Position numbers and translations under genes: made by a program
The notes under the pieces: generated by a model
Databases searched by the model: none
The model's input: the letters and a program-made list of their open reading frames with translations, nothing else
What the model was told of the DNA's origin: nothing
In this document: positions 1 through 64,000 of the stretch, one piece after another
Position numbering within the stretch: position 1 is the stretch's first letter
Layout of the letters: each line of letters starts with the position of its first letter
Assembly: GCA_002269645.1 (NCBI GenBank)
Contig: NIVC01001606.1
Span: forward strand, 62,001 to 126,000
Length of the DNA stretch: 64,000 bases
From: Macrostomum lignano
Lineage: Eukaryota
Reading direction: 5' to 3'

Positions 1-411
1 GTTCCCTGTGTTGCAAATAATTTAATTCCATGCTATATTCTCACCTACAGTGACACTGACGCATCCCTGCTGTTAATGCCAAGTACCACAATGGCGGAAC
101 GTCTCAATGCAGAGTTGGAGAAGCTGGACAGCGAGTCTTCTCATGCCATCCTACAGTCAGGCACAGGACTTCATATTGAACGCGAAGTCGGTCGTGAGAT
201 CGAATTCATGCGGTCAACTGGCCAACTCGGCAAGCTGCTGCAGACAATGAACAGTGCCCTTCTGTCCATTCCTCCTACAAGCGTCGAGGCAGAGAGAGCT
301 TTTTCTGCTGCTGCTATCCTGATGAATCGGATCCGTTCGCGCTTGGCTGATGAGACGCTATCAAAATTGTGCATGCTTCGATCGTATTTTCAGAAGCAGT
401 CGACATCCTAA
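1..411 (+). CDS. hAT-family transposase, C-terminal dimerization domain (5'-truncated by window edge)
   Basis: ORF 76-411 contains LLSIPPTSVEAERAFSAA...RSRLADETLSKLCMLRSYF, the hAT dimerization motif (IP.TS...ER.FS...R.RL). The same frame is open back to base 1. Confidence 0.85.
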   Translation, partial: VPCVANNLIPCYILTYSDTDASLLLMPSTTMAERLNAELEKLDSESSHAILQSGTGLHIEREVGREIEFMRSTGQLGKLLQTMNSALLSIPPTSVEAERAFSAAAILMNRIRSRLADETLSKLCMLRSYFQKQSTS

Positions 412-1042
412 ACTGACTTGTCACATTGGACTCAATGGGATGATAGAAATCGCGCTACTGGATTTTGCGCGACCTTGCTTTCGCGCATCCTGTTCGTGCA
501 TAATCCAGTCGCACGAAAGCCAGGTCTCGCGAAATCCAGTAGCGCGATTTCTATCATCCCGACTCCATGAATGGCAACAATGCTATAAGTAGTATTTTCT
601 TACACTACTGTAAGTAAAAATTGCAGTATCATTAATTAACCAAATAATTTCGAAATAAATTGCATGCGGAAGAGCCCCCCCCCCCCGGGCTGACCCGCTG
701 GGCCGTTCGGCCGAAATCGTTCGACAACAAGTAGTATTTTCTTCTGTCAAGGTCAAGCCTTTAGCACGGACTGCAATTATTTGTATGATTTTGCACTTCT
801 CTTTTGTTGCAGGCTCTGAGTTCTCAGCTAACCAGAACTTGAAATTTTGTTTTTAAGTCATTCGGACTCGGACCTCGGGTCGGGATCCCGGGATCCCGGG
901 ATTTCTGAAACTTTTAAACGGGATCCCGGGATTTCAAAAGCACCGGGATTCCGGGATTTTGAATCCCGGGATTTCAACAGCATCGGGATTTCGGGACTAT
1001 TCAATCCCGGGATTGTAAAATGTCGGGATTTTGGAATCCCTA
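1..1042 (+). mobile_element. Right end of a hAT DNA transposon (subterminal CGGGAT repeats and terminal inverted repeat)
   Basis: After the transposase, 880-1040 holds many CGGGAT/ATCCCG motifs in both orientations. It ends ...gggattttggaatcccta at 1042 (reverse complement TAGGGATTCC..., a hAT-like terminus). The left end is outside the window. Confidence 0.65.
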
Positions 1043-10536: not shown

Positions 10537-11822
<1,286 letters not shown>

Positions 11823-21408: not shown

Positions 21409-21720
21409 TTGACGAAAAACACGCGCAATGAAGCGTACATGAATGCTTAATAATGTAATATGCTTATTTTATTATATTTATATTTTGCCTGTGCGACTGT
21501 CAAAAACTGTATTAAAAATATAACTAATCCGTTTTGTAACACACTTTATGCATTAGTATTATACAATTACAATCATTATCCAACAGTAAGTTAAGGCCAT
21601 AGACAATTGAAAACAGCAAGGTCAGTGATTTATAAACAACTATTGGAACTAGCTCGTAAATATGCGAGAACTACGTTTACATAGGTATTATTGAGATTTA
21701 ACTAAAAATGAGTGCTGGCG

Positions 21721-23076
21721 CCCCTTGGTGCTAAAGCCCCTTGGTGCTAAAGCCCCTTGGTGCTAAAGCCCCTTGGTGCTAAAGCCCCTTGGTGCTAAAG
21801 CCCCTTGGTGCTAAAGCCCCTTGGTGCTAAAGCCCCTTGGTGCTAAAGCCCCTTGGTGCTAAAGCCCCTTGGTGCTAAAGCCCCTTGGTGCTAAAGCCCC
21901 TTGGTGCTAAAGCCCCTTGGTGCTAAAGCCCCTTGGTGCTAAAGCCCCTTGGTGCTAAAGCCCCTTGGTGCTAAAGCCCCTTGGTGCTAAAGCCCCTTGG
22001 TGCTAAAGCCCCTTGGTGCTAAAGCCCCTTGGTGCTAAAGCCCCTTGGTGCTAAAGCCCCTTGGTGCTAAAGCCCCTTGGTGCTAAAGCCCCTTGCTGCT
22101 AAAGCCCCTTGGTGCTAAAGCCCCTTGGTGCTAAAGCCCCTTGGTGCTAAAGCCCCTTGGTGCTAAAGCCCCTTGGTGCTAAAGCCCCTTGGTGCTAAAG
22201 CCCCTTGGTGCTAAAGCCCCTTGGTGCTAAAGCCCCTTGGTGCTAAAGCCCCTTGGTGCTAAAGCCCCTTGGTGCTAAAGCCCCTTGGTGCTAAAGCCCC
22301 TTGGTGCTAAAGCCCCTTGGTGCTAAAGCCCCTTGGTGCTAAAGCCCCTTGGTGCTAAAGCCCCTTGGTGCTAAAGCCCCTTGGTGCTAAAGCCCCTTGG
22401 TGCTAAAGCCCCTTGGTGCTAAAGCCCCTTGGTGCTAAAGCCCCTTGGTGCTAAAGCCCCTTGGTGCTAAAGCCCCTTGGTGCTAAAGCCCCTTGGTGCT
22501 AAAGCCCCTTGGTGCTAAAGCCCCTTGGTGCTAAAGCCCCTTGGTGCTAAAGCCCCTTGGTGCTAAAGCCCCTTGGTGCTAAAGCCCCTTGGTGCTAAAG
22601 CCCCTTGGTGCTAAAGCCCCTTGGTGCTAAAGCCCCTTGGTGCTAAAGCCCCTTGGTGCTAAAGCCCCTTGGTGCTAAAGCCCCTTGGTGCTAAAGCCCC
22701 TTGGTGCTAAAGCCCCTTGGTGCTAAAGCCCCTTGGTGCTAAAGCCCCTTGGTGCTAAAGCCCCTTGGTGCTAAAGCCCCTTGGTGCTAAAGCCCCTTGG
22801 TGCTAAAGCCCCTTGGTGCTAAAGCCCCTTGGTGCTAAAGCCCCTTGGTGCTAAAGCCCCTTGGTGCTAAAGCCCCTTGGTGCTAAAGCCCCTTGGTGCT
22901 AAAGCCCCTTGGTGCTAAAGCCCCTTGGTGCTAAAGCCCCTTGGTGCTAAAGCCCCTTGGTGCTAAAGCCCCTTGGTGCTAAAGCCCCTTGGTGCTAAAG
23001 CCCCTTGGTGCTAAAGCCCCTTGGTGCTAAAGCCCCTTGGTGCTAAAGCCCCTTGGTGCTAAAGCCCCTTGGTGCT
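21721..23076. repeat. 16-bp minisatellite (CCCCTTGGTGCTAAAG) x ~85
   Basis: Almost perfectly homogeneous (one G>C variant near 22095). No unique spacers, so not CRISPR. Confidence 0.97.
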
Positions 23077-28100: not shown

Positions 28101-31100
28101 CCCTAAGCTACAAAACGGCATAAATTATTCATAAAACCGCGCACATGAAACACCGGCTCTCTGGGCAGACGCCACGAGGTCGCCAACTCCATCGAGCCGT
28201 TGCGACTCAGGTGGAAGCCGGCAAAACCGAAGCTCACGTTGGCCGGCACAGATTCGCTGAACCATAAATCAATTTTTCTGGCATCTTTGACGCTGTCGGA
28301 ATCGGAGTTGACTGCCAGGGCACCGGCGTGAGCTGCGGTTCCGTTGAAGACAGCAAACAGCAAGGCGGGCACTTGAGTCGGCCAGTAGATTCGATGCTGC
28401 CTGTTCAGCAACCCGCTGCTCACTTCAATTTGAGCATCGGAATTTGCGGCATCCACAACTGCCAGAACTCTTGCCGCAGCAGACTCTTTTTCTGATCGAG
28501 TTCTGTTGCCACCAGTGCCGCCTCGGGAAGTCAGGAGCTGCCAGACCAGGCGACCGGAGGCTTGGTTGAAGCTCAGGTCTAACAGGGGACCATCTTTTAT
28601 CTGAAAGGAATTGCAAGTGACAATTAGTCAAGCATCGAATTGAGAGTCAAAGTTCTAACAACTTCAATCATTGAGCTACAACTTACCGAGAAATAGAATC
28701 GCTGAAATGGCGCCAATTCAAATTCGATCTGATGCGCTATGCCACCACGATGAACATTTGACATCGACTTGCCAAGTAAAATCTTCATGCGACCATTGCG
28801 CAAGGCTACAGGACCGATGCGCTCCATCTTCGCAGGCAAATCTGCTCCAGCTTCCATTCGAGAAGTCGCATCCGGCGTGATTAGGCTAGCAAAGATTTGC
28901 AATCTTTTTAAAGAAACTTCCTGCAGAAGTGACGCCTTTAAATCGAGACGAATTGCGCGAGTCAAAGCAACCAACAACTGCATTCTGGTAGCATTAGAAG
29001 AGAGGCTGACCACCAAACCTGGCGAAGCAAGATAAGGTGAAGTAAGTTCAATCGTGTAGTTTAGCGAACTGCCACTCACTGTGAGACACCGCAGCTTATT
29101 GGCGTCAAAGGGCCGATTGATTGCATCGGGCCAGAGCATCAGCTCCCACAAATTGGCAGTCAATCGACGTTGCACCAGTCGAATCGTGCGCCAGGGAAGT
29201 CGCAGTTCCGTTGTACCATTGCTGGGCGAGTTGCTAAGCACAACACCCGAGGTTCGTCGGAAATCCGGCGTTAAATGCCACTTGGAAACGCCAGCGATTG
29301 TTGTTCGTGAGACTTTGAAATGTCGGATCATTGTGTAACACTCGAACTGCCAATTTTTCACATCGCTGCTAGCATTGAAGGCGATTCGTACTTGGTCTGT
29401 CATTGAGAAGTGAAGCAAAGGTGCTCGGCTTTTCATTAGATACGGTAGAACTACCCGACCGCGACAAGCACTCTGGTTAGTGCTGGTTTCAGCGTTGAAT
29501 TCCGCAATTCCAGTTTTACTAGCAGAGACTTGAACTGCCAATAGTTGCTTTGCTTGCTCGCGACACACAACACCTGCTGTGGCTTCTCCGTTAGCAGATT
29601 TCCAGTTGACCTCGGCTTCGTAGTGTAGGGCTTGAATCAACTTGAAACCTTTAGTCATGACAGTACCTATCAGTTTGCTACCTTGGCTTTTCGTGACTGC
29701 TTTAGCAATAGTGACGTCAGCTTGCTGAAGACCGCCATCAGCTTGATAGGTGCACACAAGACTGACATTCCGAACTTTCAACTGCGAATCCAAAGCAACC
29801 ATGCGAACAATATTGAGAGACGCGGGCCTCAGCAAACTCAAAGTTGGTGCTGTAAGATTCGCCGCAAATTTCAAACTCTTAACATTGTCTTGATTATTCC
29901 ATGGAAATTGAAACAGATTTGGGTAAAGCATATCAAGTTTATCTGCAGAGTCAGCAAGGCTTACTTTCAAGCTGTTTTGTGTGATATCTACGTCTCCGAA
30001 ACCATTTGAACTGCCAAAGATTTGCACCGTACGACTTGCAGTCTTGTGATTCCAGAAAATGCGCCAAGAATTTGATACAGTCTCTATCTGCGCTTCGGAG
30101 GCGGCCGCTGACAGCACGACGCGATGGCGGTGACGAAATCGCCAGCTGGACCAGAAGTCAAGATTGAGAAGGCCATTGGACAGCCAGTCATCCGGAGTCC
30201 AAACGGCGGTCAGGTTGACAGGTCCAGGAGGTGTTGGTAGACGGAGCGCTAGTCCGGGAGCCAGAGGCACTCGACCATCAAAGCTGCCGTTTGCACTATG
30301 AATCAGCGACAACGAGCTTGTGCTAATCCCCAGTTTAACAGAAGCTAGATTAGCACCTCGACCAAAAACAGCACGAATGCGACTGGGCCAGTCAGCCTCA
30401 ACATCTAAAGTACCAACAGTGGTCTCTGATGAACTTTTGGCCCGATGCTGCGAATTCAGACGAAAACGAAATCTTGCAAGGCTGGTTGCTTGGACTGACC
30501 AGTTGAAGTCGACTGGCGCGAATCCACTGGCAGTGATGCGAAGACTGCTAGGACCATCAGGCTGTTGAACTGAGTATTTGGTGCCGCGGATGATCACTGA
30601 AGACTGGGCTGTTGGATCTGGGTCCAAGCGAGTGCCTCGGAAGCGAACGTCTGCTGTCACAACGTCGCCACCATCGTTTAGAAACAGTCGCCATCTCTTT
30701 CTGCCATTTTCTCCTACAGTAGCTTCTTCGGTAGCATTCAGAGTCACTGCCGGACAGATTACCCGGAGACCACTGGAAATCACGGGGTTTTCGCTACTGC
30801 CATTGCTAGTTTGGCGGTAAATCCGACCACTTAGAAGGTCCATTCCTGCAGTTGCTCCACTCAGCGTCAATTCAAAGTCGCTATCATCAATGCCGCCTCC
30901 TGAGGTCAGGCCGACGCTGGCGTTGGCAACAAAGGCCTCAATGGAGTTCACACCGAAGGCTATGCCGAGAACCCAGTCATCGCGTCGACGTATGTAACCT
31001 TTTGGATCGAAATTTCTATTGCTGATTCGGCGAGCATCAAAAATCCTTAGCGACTCGCCGTGCGCTATTCGGTCAATATAGGTAGCTGCCGGAGTGGCAA

Positions 31101-34100
31101 CAAACTCGAGTTGCTGCAGCGACCTCCATGACGTCTTGATAAAACCGCGCAAATTTGTTTCCCCGCTTCCTGCCAAGACAGCTGCAACGCTAGCATTCAG
31201 AAGCTGCGGCTCAAAAGTCAATATCAAAAGATTGTTCTGATAGTGCACTCGAGCTTTTAAATTAGTCAGCGTCTCGTCAAACTCGTGCTCGTACAGCGCA
31301 ACGAAATTGGAGCTTGGACCCGACAGAGACGCGGACACGAGAGCTACCCGACGCGACAGTTGGCAGCGGAGCTCCGCCGAACATCGGCGCCAGTGAGCGA
31401 CCGGCGTCGCCAATCCAAGGCGCAGATGCAGCGGCCACCAGCAAGCAAGCACCTCCACCCCGGCCACCGGCTCGAGGCCAAAAGCTGACACAGGAGACGT
31501 CAGCCACCAGGCAAGGTCGACCTCCCCGCGCCGAGTCGCAATCAGTCGAGCTGACAAGCGAAGCTGCTTAGCGATGTCAGAAAAAGGCGCCGCATCTTCC
31601 AGTCCGTACAGATCCAGGGCCTGAAAATTTAAACAGCAAATAAACATCGTGGATAACTCGAGAAATCCGAACTCAAACAAAACATCTTACCTGCTCAACA
31701 GTCAGATTGAATAACGGAAGCTGATTTGAAGCGCCATTGAACGTAACACCACCGCGTCCTCGGGCATCAGCTCTAAACTCATGTCCGTAGCGCACGTACC
31801 TTACAGTAGCAGCATAGCCTTCAGCAACGTCTGAGCTACGATAGTCGAGTCCGATTTGCTCTATTTTCGGTTCCGACGTATTTAACAGGAAAGTCAATCG
31901 TCCACCACTTGAAGGACGCTTCACTGCCAGGTGGATATCTGGGCCCCATCTGTTGTCGATGCTAGTTCTCTCAAAGTCCAATCGCATACTGCCGAGTTTG
32001 GGCCAGCTAATTTCGAGCCTCTGACGAGCCCGAATGTTCGGCTGCTCAGCTAAAAGTCTAAGCAAACCAACTGACAGGTTGATTGCTCCTGAGAAATTGA
32101 AGTTACCGGCGCTAGCACCAGTGGTAGGGCTGGTAGCCTTGATAAGGATAGAAGCAGTTCGCGATGATAAGTTCCAGTCAGCTGTCAGCAGTCCCTGTCT
32201 TCCGCTTACGTACGACCGAAGTTCAAACTGCACGGAGGCTCTCTCAGCTGGCCAGTTCGATAGTTTTGCACGAAGCTCGCCGCGGCCGGCGACTTCAAGC
32301 GTTGCTTGAACCTGACGCTGTAGCTTGAGAACTCTGACATCCAACAAGACCTGCGAGCTGCCCCAGCCTTTCTGCAGGACATGCCGATGCAGCAGTCGCA
32401 AGTCTACTGCATCAATGTCTGTCTGAACACTGGCTAAAAGGCTGTTCCCGAGACTGAATGTCATGTTCTGACGAGCTCTGACTGTACTGAGCAGCTGCCA
32501 AAGTTGGCGCAAGAAAGCTGCAGTCACTGCGTTGGCGCTTGCGCGATCGATCGCAACAAAATCTGCGCGTACGAGCTGTCGGGCAGCTTTCACCGTGGCG
32601 TCATCAACAGCGGCTTGGGTGGAAATTTTCAAACCGCCGCTGCGTAGGAGATGCGAGTTATTTGAAGTTTCAACAGTGAGAGCGTAGCCGACTCGATGCC
32701 ACCATGTTGATGCACTGGCTGAGTAGTTTTCAGCCAGCTCAACCTGCTGTTTCATCCTGAACAGGCACTTTCCGTTTAGCTCGAACAAGCTGACAAGTTT
32801 GAAGAAACCTCTGCGATAGGCAAGCCAACTGAGTTGATTTGTCAGGCTGAAGTTTCTCGGCACAAGGCTGCCATCTGCGCTGATCTGATGCGTCAGACCA
32901 CGGTTCTCAGGCAGGTGCAACAAGGATTGTTGAAAGTAAATTGCGTTCTTGGAATGCTTAGGTTCTCGGAATCTCTGCGTGTCAATTGTCAATCGCAGAG
33001 ACTGGTTCAGTGAGGTCAAAGCTGGCCAGTAGTGCTTGATATTGAATGCTATGCCGTCAGTTTCTTTATAAATTCTCATACCGCTGGGAGAACGAATAAA
33101 CCGAACATCTAGGTTGAAGCTTTCCAGTGGCGCCGGACGAAATACGCCATCTGCAGTTTCGATTAACCCCATGGAAGCTGCTACAGTTGTCGATCTGCTT
33201 GAATTTGATGACAAAATCGTCAAAGCTCCACGAGCTTGACACAGCGACATGAAGTTACTGCCGGCATCAGACACAGATAGGTTCAATAGAGCCTTTGGAA
33301 CTTCTAGCCTTTGCCCGAGAGTGCCAACAAGGCTAAATATTTCACCGCCACCAGACAGTGCGAGCCATTTCTCACCTCGCGTCTCTGCTAACGAAACATT
33401 GATCGTGTCGGTTCTGTCAGAAAAAACATCAGACGGCAGCATTGAAAAGCTTCTTCCAAGCGCGCTATGAGTAAATAACTCAAGTCGATGCCCTAAACTT
33501 AAATTTAGGGTACCTAAGCCATTTTCAATGCCAGCTCGGCTCACGGAGGTTTCAAGTCGATGCCGCATCCATCCAACCCCAAGTTGTCGGGCTTCTGTCG
33601 ATTGAACAAACACCAGCTTATCTGAGGAACCATTCGACACGCGACCGCCAGAAATTCCAAAACGCGCAGAGGCCGTCTCATTACTGCCTGATTCGGTTAG
33701 CCGCGCAGAAACTGCTGCTTCAAAATCCGAGGCACGAAGTCGCAAAGTTCGAGCCAAAGTGAGGCTTCCAAAGTCGCCATCTAAACTGTTGATACGCCGG
33801 CTGCCGTTGGGAAATCTCACAGTGAGTTGATCAGTGCCGGACACTGCATCGGAGACCAAGTCTAGACCGAATCTCTGCCAGGATCTGTCCACTCTGGACA
33901 CGTCGCCAGTCAGTCTGATAAAGGGAAGTGAAAAAGTACACCTTTGTCTTCATAAACCAAGTCCAGAGCTTGGGGCTCAACAGTAATGGGTCTGAACTTT
34001 GTGCCAAATTGATCTGATTATGACAGCAATAGCTGCAGGATATGGTTGCGGGCATTCTGGCTTCGGCGAAATCGTCAAATAATTGTGCCCGTTCCTCTGG

Positions 34101-45899: not shown

Positions 45900-55856
<9,957 letters not shown>

Positions 55857-57543: not shown

Positions 57544-60500
57544 TCAAGGCACAAAAATTGATTTTACCAAGGGAATCAGCTTCAACAACGCGTACCCGAT
57601 AAGTGCGGAACACAGAGTGAGCGGTGTAAATACAGTAGCCTGCACTGCGATCAAAACAAGAGCCAATAAAACCCCGAATGTTGACGAAATCGCGTCCACA
57701 AAAATATAACGTCTTCGCATCGAAAACTCTTCGTTAGGCATGGCTGTTCGAGCCCGACGCCTGATTAGTTGCAGAAATCGACAGCCGGCGATAACAAGGT
57801 TGAGAACTAGGCCAACGCTCTCAAAAATTGGAATTTTAACGCCGACTTTTCTTAAGCCAGACGCGTGGTGCATTGCAAACTTCAGGAATCTAATGCCATC
57901 GGCAGCTAAATGGTGTAGAAAACTCGGTACAAAGCCAAACAGCCTCCTCGAGTGCCTAACTAGCTGCAGACAGACAACTCTGCCATAAATCAAGTAGTTG
58001 ACAAAGTGCTCGCAATTGTTGAACGGAATGCTGTAATCTTCGCCTCCGCGCAGATCTCGAATCTTTTCTTGAATTAGATCCCAATTGAATTCTGAGTTGT
58101 GCACCACTTTCTCGATCTGACCTGGGCCAGTTAATCTGAGAAAGCCTTTAAACTCGTAGAATCCCATTTCGGTCTTCTTTACGGGAAATTCGTAAGTTAC
58201 TCCATAGCCGGTAGATAAATTTGCATCCCAGCTCGTGATGACGAAGTGAACTTCTGCTTCCTTACCAGCTACAGTGCGCCTAAGAACGATGTGATCCAAC
58301 GGTTTTAGGCTTCGTCCACCTACGATGGTTTCCGTGTCCTTCCTCTTGACTTTCAGTTCGTTCCTTAACAGCCCCAACTCCTCGCCGAGTAAGTTTTTGA
58401 CTGCCTTGATGCCATCCTTTGAGAAGCGAGTTTTTATCCAGAAGCAGAAATCTTGGCTAGTCACTCTGCTGCCTTGCATTCCTAGGTAGCCCAGCCGATC
58501 GTCATCCGCATTTAGAAACGTATGATCAATCAGATTTTCTAGTTCTGCTTGGTTCCATTCTCGACAGCTTGCGTACCGAACTCTTTGGAGGTGCTCATCT
58601 TCTCCAATGTCCAGCTTCTCAATGCGGACATGCTTGAAAACGACGTTGTTTTCATAGTATATCACTCTCAGCACATCGTCGCAGTCTTCAACTTTACTGC
58701 ACTCTTTGAGAAGAACATCGTGCGCGTAGAGAGACTTCGGCTTCTTCAAGAATTTGATGTGTCCTCTTTGGAAACGATGTAGATCGTCTGCCGAGGTAAC
58801 AGGAACGATGCACTGTTCCAAATTACTCTGGTGCTTGATGCTGCACCATCGAGCTAAGTCTCGGCCGCTGTTCCACTGGAAGTTGTGCTGTCTCTCTCCC
58901 AGACGCGAGCGAGCCCTAAGAACCACCTCCTCAGTTGAGTAGAGAACCTCGTTCGAGACACAGTACTTCACAACGTAAACTGGCGTTGTTCTTAAATTTA
59001 TTGTGTAGCTGCTCTCGGCGACGGAATTTTTTCCGAGCAACATAGAAGGTCCTACATTGTAGGAAATCGCGCTAAACATCACTTGGTTTTTCATTGCCGG
59101 TGTACTAATGATTTTGGGACAATCGGTGACAACCAAGTGTTTGAAGACTAAGCCGTCTCTGGTGCTAATGACGCACCCTTTGTAAATTTCATTCACACTC
59201 GTCACCTTGGTTACAGTGTAGCTGGGTGTTTCAAGTCCTCCACCGTACAGATGACAATCTCGGAAAATGTCGTTGTGAACGCAAAGCACAGCCTGTCTTT
59301 CGTATTTTTCGATAGCAATTTTTATTTCAAACAGGCAGTTATGAGCATTTTTGTTTACTCGACGGGCAGAGTACTGAATTTTAGTTATCAGAGCACCTGA
59401 GCCATCGCATCTGACTGCAGACACCACTGAGTATATGCCGTCATGCAGTATGATGTCGCCTGGATTCAACAGCTCTGGGCGAATGGTCTTACAGAGTGGT
59501 TGCGCAGTTTCTGTCGTGACGTTTGGAACCTGGATAGCTCGACAAAGCCAGTCTTCCCTGCTTAAGTTAGGATTGGTCAGGTGTAGACAGAAGGCAACTT
59601 TTCCAACCAAACGCTTGTAGGAAATATCCTGTATCATTCTGATTCGCCATTGTAAATCTTCACTAGTCAGACCAATTGCAGCTGATTTTACAACTTGTAC
59701 TGGTTTTTGAATTCTAGTTTCACAAATGTGCGCAGAGTTGATTATTTCTCTGTTCACGTGTCTACTCGACACTAGCATAGTTAACAAAACCTGCGACTCA
59801 CTCGCCTTGACAGCATCTCTAACTTCTCCGTGTAATTCAATTTCACCGTCTGTCGCAAAGTTCAAATGGTCGCCAACTTTCACTTCGTGAATGTGCTGAT
59901 TAGCGGCTACAAAGATCGGTGCAATATTGTTCGCACGATTGCTAACCGACTGGGTCTTGCACCAAAATGCAAAATGAGACGCCCTGTTGTCAATGACCGA
60001 GTGCTCTCGTTCGTTCAGCCGACTTCGAGCTCTTTGCACTACCACATCGGGTGGGTGGCACCAGGTTGGTGGGAAGTGACACTTCCAGCATTTCCTGCTC
60101 AGCGCCCCACCGGGATCCAATGAGTCTTTTCGAGCAATGAATTGAAATTTTTCTCTCATTACCTGGACAGAAAGCCAGTCTCTTCCGTAGTGAATGGCAT
60201 CGATGGTGATGATCAACTCCTGCTCAGTGTCAACGATGCTCGTGTTCTCCACGATAATTTTGTGCGGCAGTTCAAAGTATCGGATTTCTAGTACGTCGCC
60301 AATGGCAACATTCTTGATTGATTTGCACGTGAGCCTCTCCTCGTAGCAATACACCCGTGGTGCCGTATCGGCTTGTGACTCGGTTGATTCGCAGGGCGCA
60401 TCACAAGCGGTAGCGAGTTCGTCAGCTTCAACAGCATCACTTTCAGTCGTGTTTTCGGCTACAGCGGAAACGAAAATTCCCTGGTTCTGAGTTTGTTCCT

Positions 60501-60583
60501 AAAAGTAGAAAAGATATTCGTGGTATTGTGTGTATAACATTGTCGATTTTTAGTTACATGTAACAAGCGAAAGAACTTACCAT
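57544..60583 (-). CDS. Multi-LRAT/PLAAT (permuted NlpC/P60) domain membrane protein, ~985 aa (copy 1)
   Basis: ATG|gtaagt at 60583-60581 spliced (82-nt intron) to a single 2955-nt exon 60498-57544. Repeated LRAT signatures: GD..I..H..., VV.RARSRL.E..(Y/H)..N and NRASHFAFWCKT, NSGRDLARWCSIK, TSQDFCFWIKT, YSIPFNNCEHFVNYLIYG. Hydrophobic C-terminal helices. Confidence 0.85.
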
Positions 60584-61550
60584 AGCGGTCAAGCGCCTCG
60601 CCAGAAAATCCTGTGCACTGTGCATTACAAAAAGCAAGCAAGATAGCTAATAAATATAAACGCTCGTATCTCTGACATGTTATAAATAGCTCTGACATAT
60701 AAAAACACGCCTGAAGCTTGATGCGAAATCTCTGTACATCTGGCGGCTTTGATAACACATTTTCCGCATGAAGTACATATAGGTAGGGCATTAGATAAGA
60801 AATTTAAGAATTTTAATATGTTAAAAATAGAAATGATTACTTTTGTATCCGCTGTCCGTTTGAGCAAGAGTTGCTTACACTCAGAAAATCGCTGCTTTCA
60901 CGTGTAAAAACAAAACGGATGAAGTCCAGCAGTACTACGAGCGTGTTTAAACAAAAAGTCAAACTTTTTTCTATGAATTTAACAGCGTTGAAAAAAAGAT
61001 AACCATTTGAAAAAAAAACTGCATAATATTCACTTATTAATTTAGTCAGATTAAGTTTCTATTAAAACAAAAATTACTACACGATTTTAATTAGCCATCA
61101 CCAATATTCATGTAATATTTATTACTCGTACTTCATTTTTTAAAAACACAGGAATTTTTTTTCTGAATAATACGCATGCATTTGGCTGCAGTACTGTTTA
61201 AAGAGGATATGAAATTGAAATAATTCTTTGTCTATAGAACGTTTCTAGATGAATGGACAACTGAAGCAGAAGGACGCTATATACACTAGAAATGACCTGG
61301 AGGCCAAAGAACGTATGTCTGCCGTAGTGAATTTAGTATGCTTTAGAGAAGGCTGAATAGGGTCGTAAATCGAAAAATTAGGTCACATATTAGAGCATAT
61401 TAATAAGGCATTAGCAATGCGGCAAGTATATGTATACGTTGGTTTAACCGGCATCTAGCACAAAATTTCTAGGAAAGCTGAGTGTATCGTCTAAGCTTGT
61501 ACTCCAGTTTTTTATGTTTATGCATCTTTAAAAAACTTAATTGCTTAAAT

Positions 61551-61913
61551 CAGGGATCAGAAAACTTCGGCCTGCGGGCCACATGAGGCTCCCTAACCCT
61601 CGAGTGCTTTGAAATTTCATAATAGCAATCCGGCCTGCTCAAGGTTTGCCTCTTCTCAGCTCTCTTCTCTTTAATAATATGTTCTCTATTCTCTCATCTT
61701 CTCTCCCTTCGCTCCTCTCATCTCCTCTGCTCTATCTTCTGTTCTCATTTATTTTGTCTCTCCTCTCCTCTTTTATCCCTCGCCTCTCCTTAATTAATTC
61801 TCTCTTCTCTATTAGCTCTGACCATCTCTCACCCTTCCACTGGCCCGCGGCTATGCACTAGATTCTCTAGTCGAGAGAAGGCCCTTCAGGTAAAAAAAGT
61901 TTGCCAAGCCCTG
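61551..61913. mobile_element. hAT-Charlie-type MITE
   Basis: cagggatcagaaaacttcggcctgcgggccacat...tggcccgcgg...aaaagtttgccaagccctg; imperfect 8-bp flanks gcttaaat/gtttaaac; CT-rich interior. Confidence 0.7.
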
Positions 61914-62298
61914 GTTTAAACTAAAAGCAACTGTTTTTTTCCTGAGTACGTCACGCAATTAAGTCGAAAAATACCATAAATATGCATGTACCGTAAACTT
62001 CTGGACTTTATGCATGGTCTTCAGCATATTACAAGGTCGTAGTTTGTCTGGAGCTATTAAATAAGCAATTTTGTATGGTAGAGTAAATAATTACTTTAGA
62101 ATAAGTATACGCATAGACAATTACTGAAGTAGGGCAATGGTATGGTCATGGGGTTTCACCATAGACAAATTAGCTTTCTCGAAAATATACTAAGACTAAG
62201 AGCATCCTTCTACTTCAGTTGTCCATGACTGTTGGTACACATATCTAATAATTATTCGTAATTAAAAAATTATTCAATAAAAGGTTGCAGTGAATCTG

Positions 62299-64000
62299 CT
62301 ACGGTTTCATTCGCGCCATCAGTATGGCGCGCATGCTTGGCAGGAAGTAAGCAAGACCAACAGCCAGTGCTCCGACTCCAGCGGCACTGCCAATAATGGG
62401 GGCACTGACCGGGGCAGTGTGAATGACGGCTCCAACAATGATTACGCTAAATATTGGAACCAAAGTGCGGCACAAGATGTCACGTCTTCTGCCGAGAAAC
62501 TCCTGCTGAGGCATATTGAAGTTCGCTTTGCGATACTGCAAAAGCAGATATGATGCAATACCCAAAAGGGCAATTAAAAGCACCGAGCCGCCCTCAATCA
62601 GCACTAAGGGAAGTGAAGGAGCTGTGCTCAAACTTCCCGTCTCCATCAAGGTGTAGACTAATCGAAGGATTCGAACTGCAGCAGTAGCAATGCTTTGTAC
62701 CGCGTTGGGCAAAAAGTGGCTAAAACGCCAGGCTAGATTATTCAGCTGAGTACTGCTCACCCGGCCATAAATTAAATAGTTGACAAGGTGTTCGCAGTTG
62801 TTAAACAGTAAACTGTAACTCCTACTGCCACACAGTTGATTGAATTTGGCGTCGATCTGATTCCAGTCTAAATCGGAGTTGTGCACGACCTTCTCGATCT
62901 GATTGTCTTCAACTCGAAGAAATCCTTGAAACTTGACGACTCCCATGTCTTTTGGATCCTGCGGCAATGCGTACGTGACCCCAACGCCGGAACAAGTGGC
63001 AGCATCCCACTCGGTTAAAATGAAATCAGCCTCAGAAACTACACCGTTGACCATCCGATATATTCAGAATAATGTGATCGTATTGCCTGAGACTGCGTCT
63101 ATCAACTCTGTCTTCGAGTTCAACTTTTTGATTACTTTGCGAAACCTTTAGTGATTTTTCTCTAATAAGTTTCTTCATTTTGTCCTGAATTTCGGCCAGG
63201 TCAGTACCGAACAGGCTTTGAATGCCGCACATCCGACCGGCATCAGAATTAGTTCTCAGCCAGAAGCAAAAGTCCCGGTTGCAAACCTTGCTGCCAAACT
63301 TCTTGGCCTTCGCAGTCCATCCCTTCCTGTCGTCGTCGGCATTCAAAAACGTGCAGTCCGTCAGCTCCTCCAGAATAGCAAAACCAGCGGCTTCTTCAAA
63401 GCCGTAGTAGTTGACGCGTCGAATCGAGCTCTCACCCGGGCCAATGACGAGCTTTTCAAATCGCACCTGTTTCTGGTCGTGATTATTTTCGTACAACTCG
63501 ACCCGAACAATATCGCTGCAGCCATCCACTGCAGAGCAGCTGCGCATAATTGCTTCGTGCTTGTAAAAGCAAGGCGACTTGTAGAACTTTATGTGGCCTC
63601 TCTCGAACTCAACAAGGTCTTTTGCCGAGTGTACGGGAACTGCGCACTGCTCCCTGTTGCTGCTATGCTTGATGCTGCACCAGCGAGCAAAGTCGCGACT
63701 GCTGTTCCACTGGAAGTTGTGCTGCTTCTCTTTGAGTCGGCTGTTGGCTCTTTTAATCACCTCTTCTGGGGTGAGAACGCAGCCTTCCAGTACGTTGTAC
63801 TTAATCGTATAAATTTTCTGCTTCTTCAAGTCTACTGATAAAGTTTGCCTCTCAATCTGACCTCTCCACGAACCTCTGTAAAAAATGACATCGATTGCAG
63901 CGCAGTGGGGATTGTTCGCATCCGGTAGCACCGGGTTTCCGACCACCACAGCGTGCTGGTACAGAGAATACCAATGGTCTCTCCAAGAAATGACCGAGCC
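62299..64000 (-). pseudogene. Tandem paralogue of the multi-LRAT gene (copy 2), frameshifted near 63055-63062; 5' part outside window
   Basis: ORFs 63032-63949 (open to the window edge) and 62299-63054 align collinearly with copy 1 modules 4-6 (EKQHNFQWNSSRDFARWCSIKH; TFLNADDDR; NNCEHLVNYLIYGRV) but lie in different frames. Could be a true pseudogene or an assembly error. Confidence 0.7.

Follow-up and report, generated by a model that had tools for sequence, protein, structure and literature searches.

How the LRAT fold came to be multiplied into a protein of about 1,000 residues, and whether such a protein would still act as an enzyme, is the question raised by a gene on the minus strand of a 64,000-nt window (the whole stretch analyzed here, positions 62,001 to 126,000 of contig NIVC01001606.1, assembly GCA_002269645.1) from the free-living flatworm Macrostomum lignano. 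LRAT/PLAAT enzymes are small, single-domain, tail-anchored proteins with roles in N-acyl-phosphatidylethanolamine synthesis, organelle breakdown, and virus entry. The product of the window gene instead carries up to 6 LRAT-derived modules, M1 to M6, followed by a hydrophobic tail, and only M6 has kept the nucleophile Cys. The reading we favor, with modest confidence, is that of a cytosol-facing, membrane-anchored PLAAT-type thiol acyl-hydrolase/transferase that would carry 5 noncatalytic LRAT-derived modules for binding or regulation.

The locus is an intact M. lignano gene. A first-pass annotation made from the DNA letters had placed the gene at 57544-60583, with nearly all of the coding sequence in a 2.9-kb exon, and had quoted short motifs from each module. 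The coordinates and strand were correct, and all of the quoted motifs are present in the translation (Table 1). An open reading frame (ORF) of 936 codons at 57544..60354 stays open upstream as far as 60498, filling an exon of 57544-60498 that is preceded by a short first exon encoding MHSAQDFLARRLTAM. This peptide is the N-terminus of the annotated protein BOX15_Mlig027402g1 (hereafter P0001), and it is also identical in NIVC01004522.1, an allelic or homeologous contig. In a word-index protein search the predicted 999-residue product is 99% identical to P0001 over the whole query, and tblastn maps P0001 residues 16–999 to 60498..57547 at 98.98% identity. P0001 bears the database label "LRAT domain-containing protein" and is otherwise unnamed.

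Contig NIVC01004522.1 is 98.9% identical across the gene, with the same intron and an intact coding sequence of 3000 nt. The 2 copies differ at 10 synonymous and 10 nonsynonymous codons, a ratio of nonsynonymous to synonymous polymorphism (pN/pS) of 0.29 that suggests constraint, though the counts are small. A decaying pseudogene, or an artefact of assembly or annotation, would be in keeping with the frameshift found in a tandem neighbor within the window and with the repeat-rich, highly duplicated M. lignano genome. We consider this explanation very improbable and rejected it, since the 2955-nt exon is unbroken in 2 independent assemblies, the splice sites are canonical, the NIVC01004522.1 copy is intact with its low pN/pS, and the architecture has been kept across many paralogs.

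The evidence that the modules belong to the LRAT family differs from one module to the next. Against the Pfam LRAT model (PF04970, curated cut-off 24.3 bits) the whole protein scores 54 bits (E = 2.7e-14) through 3 matched stretches. Taken singly, M6 exceeds the cut-off at 28.4 bits over model positions 81–119 only, M1 falls just under it (22.4 bits, E = 1.6e-4, positions 3–117 of 120), and M4 reaches 16.6 bits (E = 0.01) over its C-terminal two thirds; M2, M3, and M5 had no relevant Pfam match in the window protein or in the 5 or 6 paralogs searched. A second reference was built from 239 LRAT modules of non-Macrostomum (bivalve) relatives and used both as a hidden Markov model (HMM) and, in hhalign, as a profile against module alignments drawn from 10 paralogs. 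The HMM gave 81.6 bits for M1 and 73.6 bits for M4. In hhalign, M1 matched at 99.9%, M4 at 99.8%, and M6 at 94% over 36 C-terminal columns, while M1 and M4 were homologous to each other at 99.6%. M6 also aligned with the PLAAT2 structure 4dpz (E = 1e-5) and with PLAAT3 (4dot, E = 4e-4). On these profile matches M1, M4, and M6 are certain LRAT modules. M5 is probably one as well, at 84% over 107 aligned columns that span the whole module.

M2 and M3 are the most diverged. M2 reaches 79% in hhalign over just 25 N-terminal columns, and M3 85% over 38 columns, or 66% over 61 columns in a second run. Reversed and column-shuffled templates gave at most 2.7% and scores of at most 17.6, compared with 33–35 for the real comparisons (controls for M5 stayed at or below 0.3%), and the transmembrane (TM) tail, compared with the same profile, gave 0.2%. 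In the reverse direction, HMMs made from M2, M3, or M5 alone match bivalve LRAT modules, that of M3 always in one register relative to the module start, scoring 27 bits at best. M2 is thus a possible full but motif-less LRAT module, and M3 a possible beta-sheet half-module of the LRAT fold with a weak LRAT match. The count of about 6 modules made in the first-pass annotation therefore stands firmly for M1, M4, and M6 and probably for M5; for M2 and M3 the support is weak and confined to the N-terminal beta part.

A smaller count, of 3 or 4 LRAT modules (M1, M4, M6, and perhaps M5), would follow if M2 and M3 were unrelated small beta-rich domains, for example SH3-like or Tudor-like barrels sharing a "GD...hydrophobic strand" motif. 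This concerns anatomy alone and is compatible with both the catalytic and the noncatalytic functional readings discussed below. It has in its favor the missing Pfam matches for M2 and M3 in every paralog, the short hhalign coverage of 25–61 columns, and structure prediction. An AlphaFold2 (AF2) model of M2+M3 from a 12-sequence alignment is confident (predicted local distance difference test, pLDDT, 83.6; predicted template modeling score, pTM, 0.82), yet Foldseek found no NlpC/P60 structure for it in PDB or BFVD: nothing fell below E = 0.05, and the best matches, at about that value, were small barrel-like fragments only. M3 in this model has 6 strands and zero helices. The Foldseek result is weak evidence, however, because the program recognized no PLAAT in M1 and M4 either, whose identity is not in doubt: a search of PDB with the full-length AF2 model returned noise only and is not evidence either way. 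The M2 model itself, with 5 strands followed by 3 helices at a pLDDT of about 80–95, resembles M1 of the full-length model in the order and lengths of these elements, a point against the smaller count. The hhalign scores stand well above the reversed and shuffled controls, the reverse HMMs of M2 and M3 fall on bivalve LRAT modules, and the bivalve relatives likewise alternate intact and degenerate modules. We regard unrelated domains at M2 and M3 as a substantial possibility, though the less likely one.

Two other features of M2-M3 (59236-59922, minus strand) were noticed. AF2 packs the 2 modules as one unit (pTM as above), and a set of His and Cys residues is invariant or nearly so in the 12 sequences (GDH, LHGEV, and LCVHxDxxxDCxLYGGG; alignment positions H27, H39, H224, and C231). 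A metal-binding site here is conceivable.

The HRASLS catalytic triad is Cys113-His23-His35, in which the third residue serves only to orient the first His; HRASLS1 has Asn there (PMC4624172). Placing the modules in the register of PLAAT2, with M6 aligned through its paralog P0022, gives the residues listed in Table 1. Modules are numbered on the 936-residue ORF, in which the putative nucleophile is Cys781; in the full-length protein it is Cys844. Among the 6 modules the nucleophile Cys is kept in M6 only, which agrees with the first-pass annotation, as does the hydrophobic tail that follows. NNCEHFVNYLIYGR, the M6 segment containing NNCEHF, aligns with PLAAT2 and PLAAT3 through the entire NCEHFVN..YG helix and is invariant in 6 paralogs that are otherwise 34–44% identical. 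M1 to M5 would be chemically dead, because the nucleophile position is occupied by Ala (M1), Gly (M4), or Ser (M5, which also lacks the second His), and M2 and M3 have no recognizable active site. A second M1 copy in the paralogs P0002 and P0003, reading "ANCGTRF", was considered as another keeper of the catalytic Cys and rejected, its Cys lying one position off the nucleophile column in the PLAAT register. Separately, a "DH" pair on the first M6 strand (LDHIVL) is invariant in all paralogs.

Downstream of M6, and nowhere else, Kyte-Doolittle hydropathy averaged over 19 residues reaches at least 1.5, within ORF residues 837–936, where the peaks form 3 segments, and AF2 predicts long helices in this tail. 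The scan of the protein found no N-terminal signal-like or hydrophobic segment, and for this reason the module array is most likely cytosolic. A strongly basic loop, RRRARTAMPNEEFSMRRR, sits between segments 1 and 2 and fits 3 full membrane passes poorly; the anchor may instead be a hairpin or monotopic. In PLAAT1–4 a C-terminal hydrophobic domain is required for endomembrane localization (PMC4624172).

The window protein is one of a large family in this species. An exhaustive profile search (722 proteins at E < 1e-3) recovered full-length relatives exclusively among M. lignano proteins: P0002–P0008, P0012, and P0031. Shorter M. lignano forms consist of M5-M6-TM or M6-TM (P0029, P0022), and at least 18 annotated gene models share the layout or parts of it. 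The order M1 to M6 is preserved down to about 25% identity, for example in P0008, and P0002 and P0003 have an additional M1-M2-M3 block. The P0004 gene shares a 43-kb contig with the allele, NIVC01004522.1. Within the window, 1.7 kb upstream of the gene, lies a tandem paralog with 93% amino acid identity to P0002 (Mlig000580g1), of which the window includes the 3' part before it stops. Near 63058-63062 an insertion of 4 nt puts "RMVNGV" out of frame with "DHIILN", where module 6 of this copy starts; the copy is a pseudogene, or the assembly is wrong here.

Mean pairwise identity across 6 paralogs is highest in M6 (0.44), followed by M5 (0.40), M1 and M4 (both 0.35), M3 (0.32), M2 (0.24), the tail (0.20), and the N-terminal leader (0.16). 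Because they are conserved far above the leader, the Cys-less modules are, on this comparison of sequences, functional parts and not spacers.

These observations can be assembled into a mechanism, in which we infer how the protein sits in the membrane, that it is an enzyme, what it acts on, and what its dead modules do. The protein would be a chain of LRAT/PLAAT (permuted NlpC/P60) domains in progressive stages of decay. Its C-terminal unit, M6 plus the amphipathic and hydrophobic tail, appears to be laid out as a PLAAT enzyme, with the Cys opening the NCEHFVN helix, a His carried by a preceding strand, and a membrane anchor directly after, and it would lie on the cytosolic face of the membrane. 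There Cys844 would form an acyl-thioester with a phospholipid acyl chain, to be followed by hydrolysis or transfer (phospholipase A1/A2 or acyltransferase chemistry). M1 to M5 should be unable to perform thioester chemistry. They are most likely noncatalytic modules for binding, spacing, or regulation, directed at a lipid, an acyl chain, or a partner protein, since their conservation among paralogs comes close to that of M6, and they would control the place and timing of action of the one active tip.

Several points weigh against this mechanism. The M6 triad is incomplete: the second-His column holds an invariant Thr, and neither the canonical His nor the Asn of HRASLS1 is present. A polar Thr there is noncanonical and may still be compatible with catalytic competence. 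In P0002 and P0003 Asp replaces the first M6 His although NNCEH is retained, while P0012 and P0031 have lost the M6 Cys or M6 entirely. Given the Thr, the Asp, and these losses, catalysis may not be the conserved function of the paralog family. By sequence, M6 can be recognized as LRAT in its C-terminal third only. The full-length AF2 model (6 sequences) has a mean pLDDT of 50, with M5 and M6 below 50; in it Cys844 starts a helix at residues 844–853 after 6 strands, in a region where the pLDDT is likewise below 50. With a cytosolic N-terminus, the basic loop of the tail is hard to reconcile with 3 simple membrane passes, the role given to the dead modules is purely conjectural, and literature searches with the gene IDs of the family turned up no paper and no activity, expression, or localization data.

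Some of these points can be read as signs that the entire protein is noncatalytic, a membrane-tethered scaffold or sensor whose M6 NCEHF helix serves binding or at most a stable self-acylation with no turnover. Beyond the invariant Thr and the Asp of P0002 and P0003, such a role would accommodate P0012, without the Cys, and P0031, without M6, both of which retain M1 to M5, and it would extend to M6 a condition that 5 of the 6 modules have reached already. In vertebrates, LRATD1/2 (FAM84A/B) have an LRAT domain and are regarded as inactive. A purely structural M6 sits less easily with the invariance of NNCEHFVNYLIYGR in paralogs so diverged elsewhere and with M6 being the best-conserved module of all. 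Substitution at the third triad position is also no bar in itself, Asn being tolerated there by active family members (PMC4624172) and Glu occurring in 24 Cys-type modules of bivalve relatives, for which activity is only putative. We judge a wholly noncatalytic protein rather unlikely and hold to the anchored acyl-hydrolase/transferase.

Many members of the NlpC/P60 superfamily are peptidases or amidases. M6 might by analogy act on proteins or peptides, as a thiol peptidase, amidase, or deacylase of the classical NlpC/P60 kind, with the dead modules recognizing the substrate. The LRAT family does branch from the NlpC/P60 papain-like superfamily (PMC4624172). Yet the combination of NCEHFVN-L-YG with an adjoining membrane anchor is a specific signature of the PLAAT/LRAT lipid-acyl branch, and no peptidase-type NlpC/P60 family was matched in the Pfam scans, so that a peptide substrate seems quite improbable.

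After Macrostomum, the next best matches are proteins of the bivalves Potamilus, Mercenaria, Mytilus, and Sinanodonta, all named "hypothetical" or "uncharacterized" (examples are Potamilus KAK3603616.1, Mercenaria XP_053378500.1, and Mytilus XP_076105740.1). They carry from 2 to about 10 LRAT modules each. The usual layout is an N-terminal His-His-Cys (H-H-C) module, then 2–3 hydrophobic segments, then one to eight His-His-Ser (H-H-S) modules, and some of the proteins interleave extra degenerate modules. Strong modules among these relatives number 162 of type H-H-S, 98 H-H-C, 24 H-E-C (the Cys-type modules with Glu at the third position), and 11 H-H-A. When the Ser-type profile is aligned to PLAAT2, "nrSshf" falls on "DNCEHF", which puts the Ser in the column of Cys113. 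The modules that the first-pass annotation described as pseudo-enzymatic would be dead by their residues; to this must be added that they appear to belong to a recognizable subtype, which in bivalves has Ser at the Cys position together with both His. M1 and M4 are nearest to these bivalve Ser-type modules, yet neither has the Ser, which is Ala in M1 and Gly in M4, and the second His is missing from M4.

The bivalve multi-LRAT proteins, with 4–10 tandem modules, resemble the window protein in having such an array, one Cys-type catalytic module, and a block of 2–3 TM segments. They differ in order, running catalytic module-TM block-array, whereas the window protein runs array-catalytic module-TM block. 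They also differ in the array itself, where bivalve modules keep both His and the Ser, and window modules carry Ala, Gly, or a Ser without the second His. The window TM tail has a weak profile similarity to the bivalve TM block (58%, 130 columns). A word-index search with module profiles returned 15 proteins, of which all the named ones are from bivalves, and one with M6 plus the tail found no significant relative outside Macrostomum and a single further M. lignano protein. M2-, M5-, and M6-like modules were not found in the bivalve multi-LRAT proteins examined, and M2 and M5 had no specific counterpart among the degenerate bivalve modules (2.2% and 0.9%). By these comparisons the same building blocks appear to be used in flatworm and bivalves in opposite order, with a single origin and 2 separate assemblies both possible. 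The suggestion that the architecture might be a lineage-specific system does not hold: elements of its layout occur, in reverse order, in bivalve proteins, and within M. lignano it is spread over the many gene models noted above.

The bivalve H-H-S modules ("NRS" at the nucleophile in the 162 strong cases) may represent a serine-nucleophile variant of the NlpC/P60-LRAT fold; if active, they would be a new catalytic variant of this papain-like fold. A broader conception would make multi-LRAT arrays an unrecognized lophotrochozoan class of membrane-anchored lipid-acyl machines. The bivalve H-H-Ser modules would be active Ser-nucleophile versions, or else acyl-holding stations that pass chains along the string, and the Macrostomum form would be derived, its stations having turned into binding, regulatory, or decoy modules that feed one Cys-type tip. 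We think this unlikely as a whole. PLAAT3 is a picornavirus host factor, and on that basis one might speculate that expanded, fast-diverging arrays serve in virus-host conflict.

Among characterized proteins, the closest to M6 are PLAAT/HRASLS 1–5 (PLA2G16 and others; structures 4dpz, 4dot, and 2kyt), which share the NCEHFVN-L-YG helix with its nucleophile Cys, the upstream His strand, and the adjoining C-terminal hydrophobic anchor. They are, however, one-domain proteins of 160–280 residues, whereas the window protein places 5 LRAT-derived modules (about 680 residues) before M6; their third triad residue is His or Asn and they have one hydrophobic segment, compared with Thr and 3 segments here; and the last third of M6 alone can be aligned with them. 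Single-domain precedents for noncatalytic function, with no array, are LRATD1/LRATD2 (FAM84A/B) and EGL-26 of Caenorhabditis elegans, LRAT proteins for which function in the absence of the canonical Cys, or independent of it, has been proposed; none of these was among the matches of our searches. The picornavirus 2A H-box/NC proteins belong to the same H...NC motif fold family and are viral and single-module, without a comparable TM tail; the M2-M3 model showed no detectable similarity to them in BFVD. Lecithin:retinol acyltransferase (LRAT) itself falls under PF04970 and uses thioester chemistry on the NCEHF Cys (PMC4624172), but it consists of one domain anchored at both termini, unlike the multi-module, C-terminally tailed window protein.

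As had been stated at first pass, no characterized protein of such an architecture turned up in literature searches. As far as these show, the multi-LRAT array has not been described before. The protein itself has a database entry and falls within a known superfamily, and its architecture is not unique to the flatworm lineage. What it adds is an LRAT fold multiplied into long strings, with one putative live domain tied to several dead ones, in a family that is large in M. lignano and has a mirror-image version in bivalves. Together these proteins show successive stages of domain decay as they occur in nature (H-H-C, H-H-S, H-H-A, motif-less), in which to study how pseudoenzyme domains gain binding or regulatory roles, and M. 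lignano is a tractable model with RNA interference and transgenesis.

Table 1. Features of the window. Triad residues are given as first His / second His / nucleophile position.
Feature	Window position	Strand	ORF residues or size	Triad residues	Description and basis
Exon 1	60581..60625	-	45 nt		ATG + 14 codons; read from sequence
Intron	60499..60580	-	82 nt		GTAAGT...TTTTAG (GT..AG)
Exon 2	57544..60498	-	2955 nt with stop codon		residues 16–999; tblastn and ORF
M1	59944..60354	-	1–137	His / His / Ala (NRASHF)	complete LRAT module, no nucleophile; LPHKII, AIHYG, NRASHF
M2	59509..59922	-	145–282		degenerate module, possibly LRAT; VKVGDHLNF, ELHGEV; 5 strands + 3 helices (predicted)
M3	59236..59496	-	287–373		possible beta-only half-module; LNPGDIILHDGIY ... 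LCVHxDxxxDCxLYGGG
M4	58822..59232	-	375–511	His / Ser / Gly (NSGRDL)	complete LRAT module, no nucleophile; FKHLVV, AISY, NSGRDL
M5	58408..58815	-	514–649	His / Tyr / Ser (TSQDF)	probable, very diverged LRAT module; YAHDVL, VIYY, TSQDFCFW
M6	57964..58320	-	679–797	His (EVHFVI) / Thr (GVTYEF) / Cys (NNCEHF)	PLAAT-like, putatively catalytic module; LDHIVL, EVHFVI, GVTYEF, NNCEHFVNYLIYGR
Putative nucleophile Cys codon	58012..58014	-	781 (844 of full protein)		aligned to PLAAT NCEHF
C-terminal tail	57547..57963	-	798–936		amphipathic stretch, then 3 hydrophobic segments
Hydrophobic segment 1	57763-57834	-	~841–864		Kyte-Doolittle
Hydrophobic segment 2	57643-57705	-	~884–904		Kyte-Doolittle
Hydrophobic segment 3	57565-57636	-	~907–930		Kyte-Doolittle
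Tandem paralog, 3' part	62299..64000	-			similar to P0002 / Mlig000580g1
TCAA array	10546-11810		x315		minisatellite scan
16-bp unit array	21720-23076		x85		minisatellite
31-bp unit array	47423-48985		x51		minisatellite; shorter array in NIVC01004522.1
30-bp unit array	50171-51638		x48		minisatellite

Elsewhere in the window, an intergenic stretch of about 560 bp at 61652-62213 is purine-rich (GAGAGG-like) and absent from NIVC01004522.1, which points to an indel polymorphism or a repeat insertion. On the minus strand at 28624-33901 there are 2 adjacent long ORFs of 1018 and 742 residues, which match no Pfam family, do not resemble the LRAT gene, and probably belong to one large unannotated gene. 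The region 9876-51638 is dense in minisatellites (Table 1).

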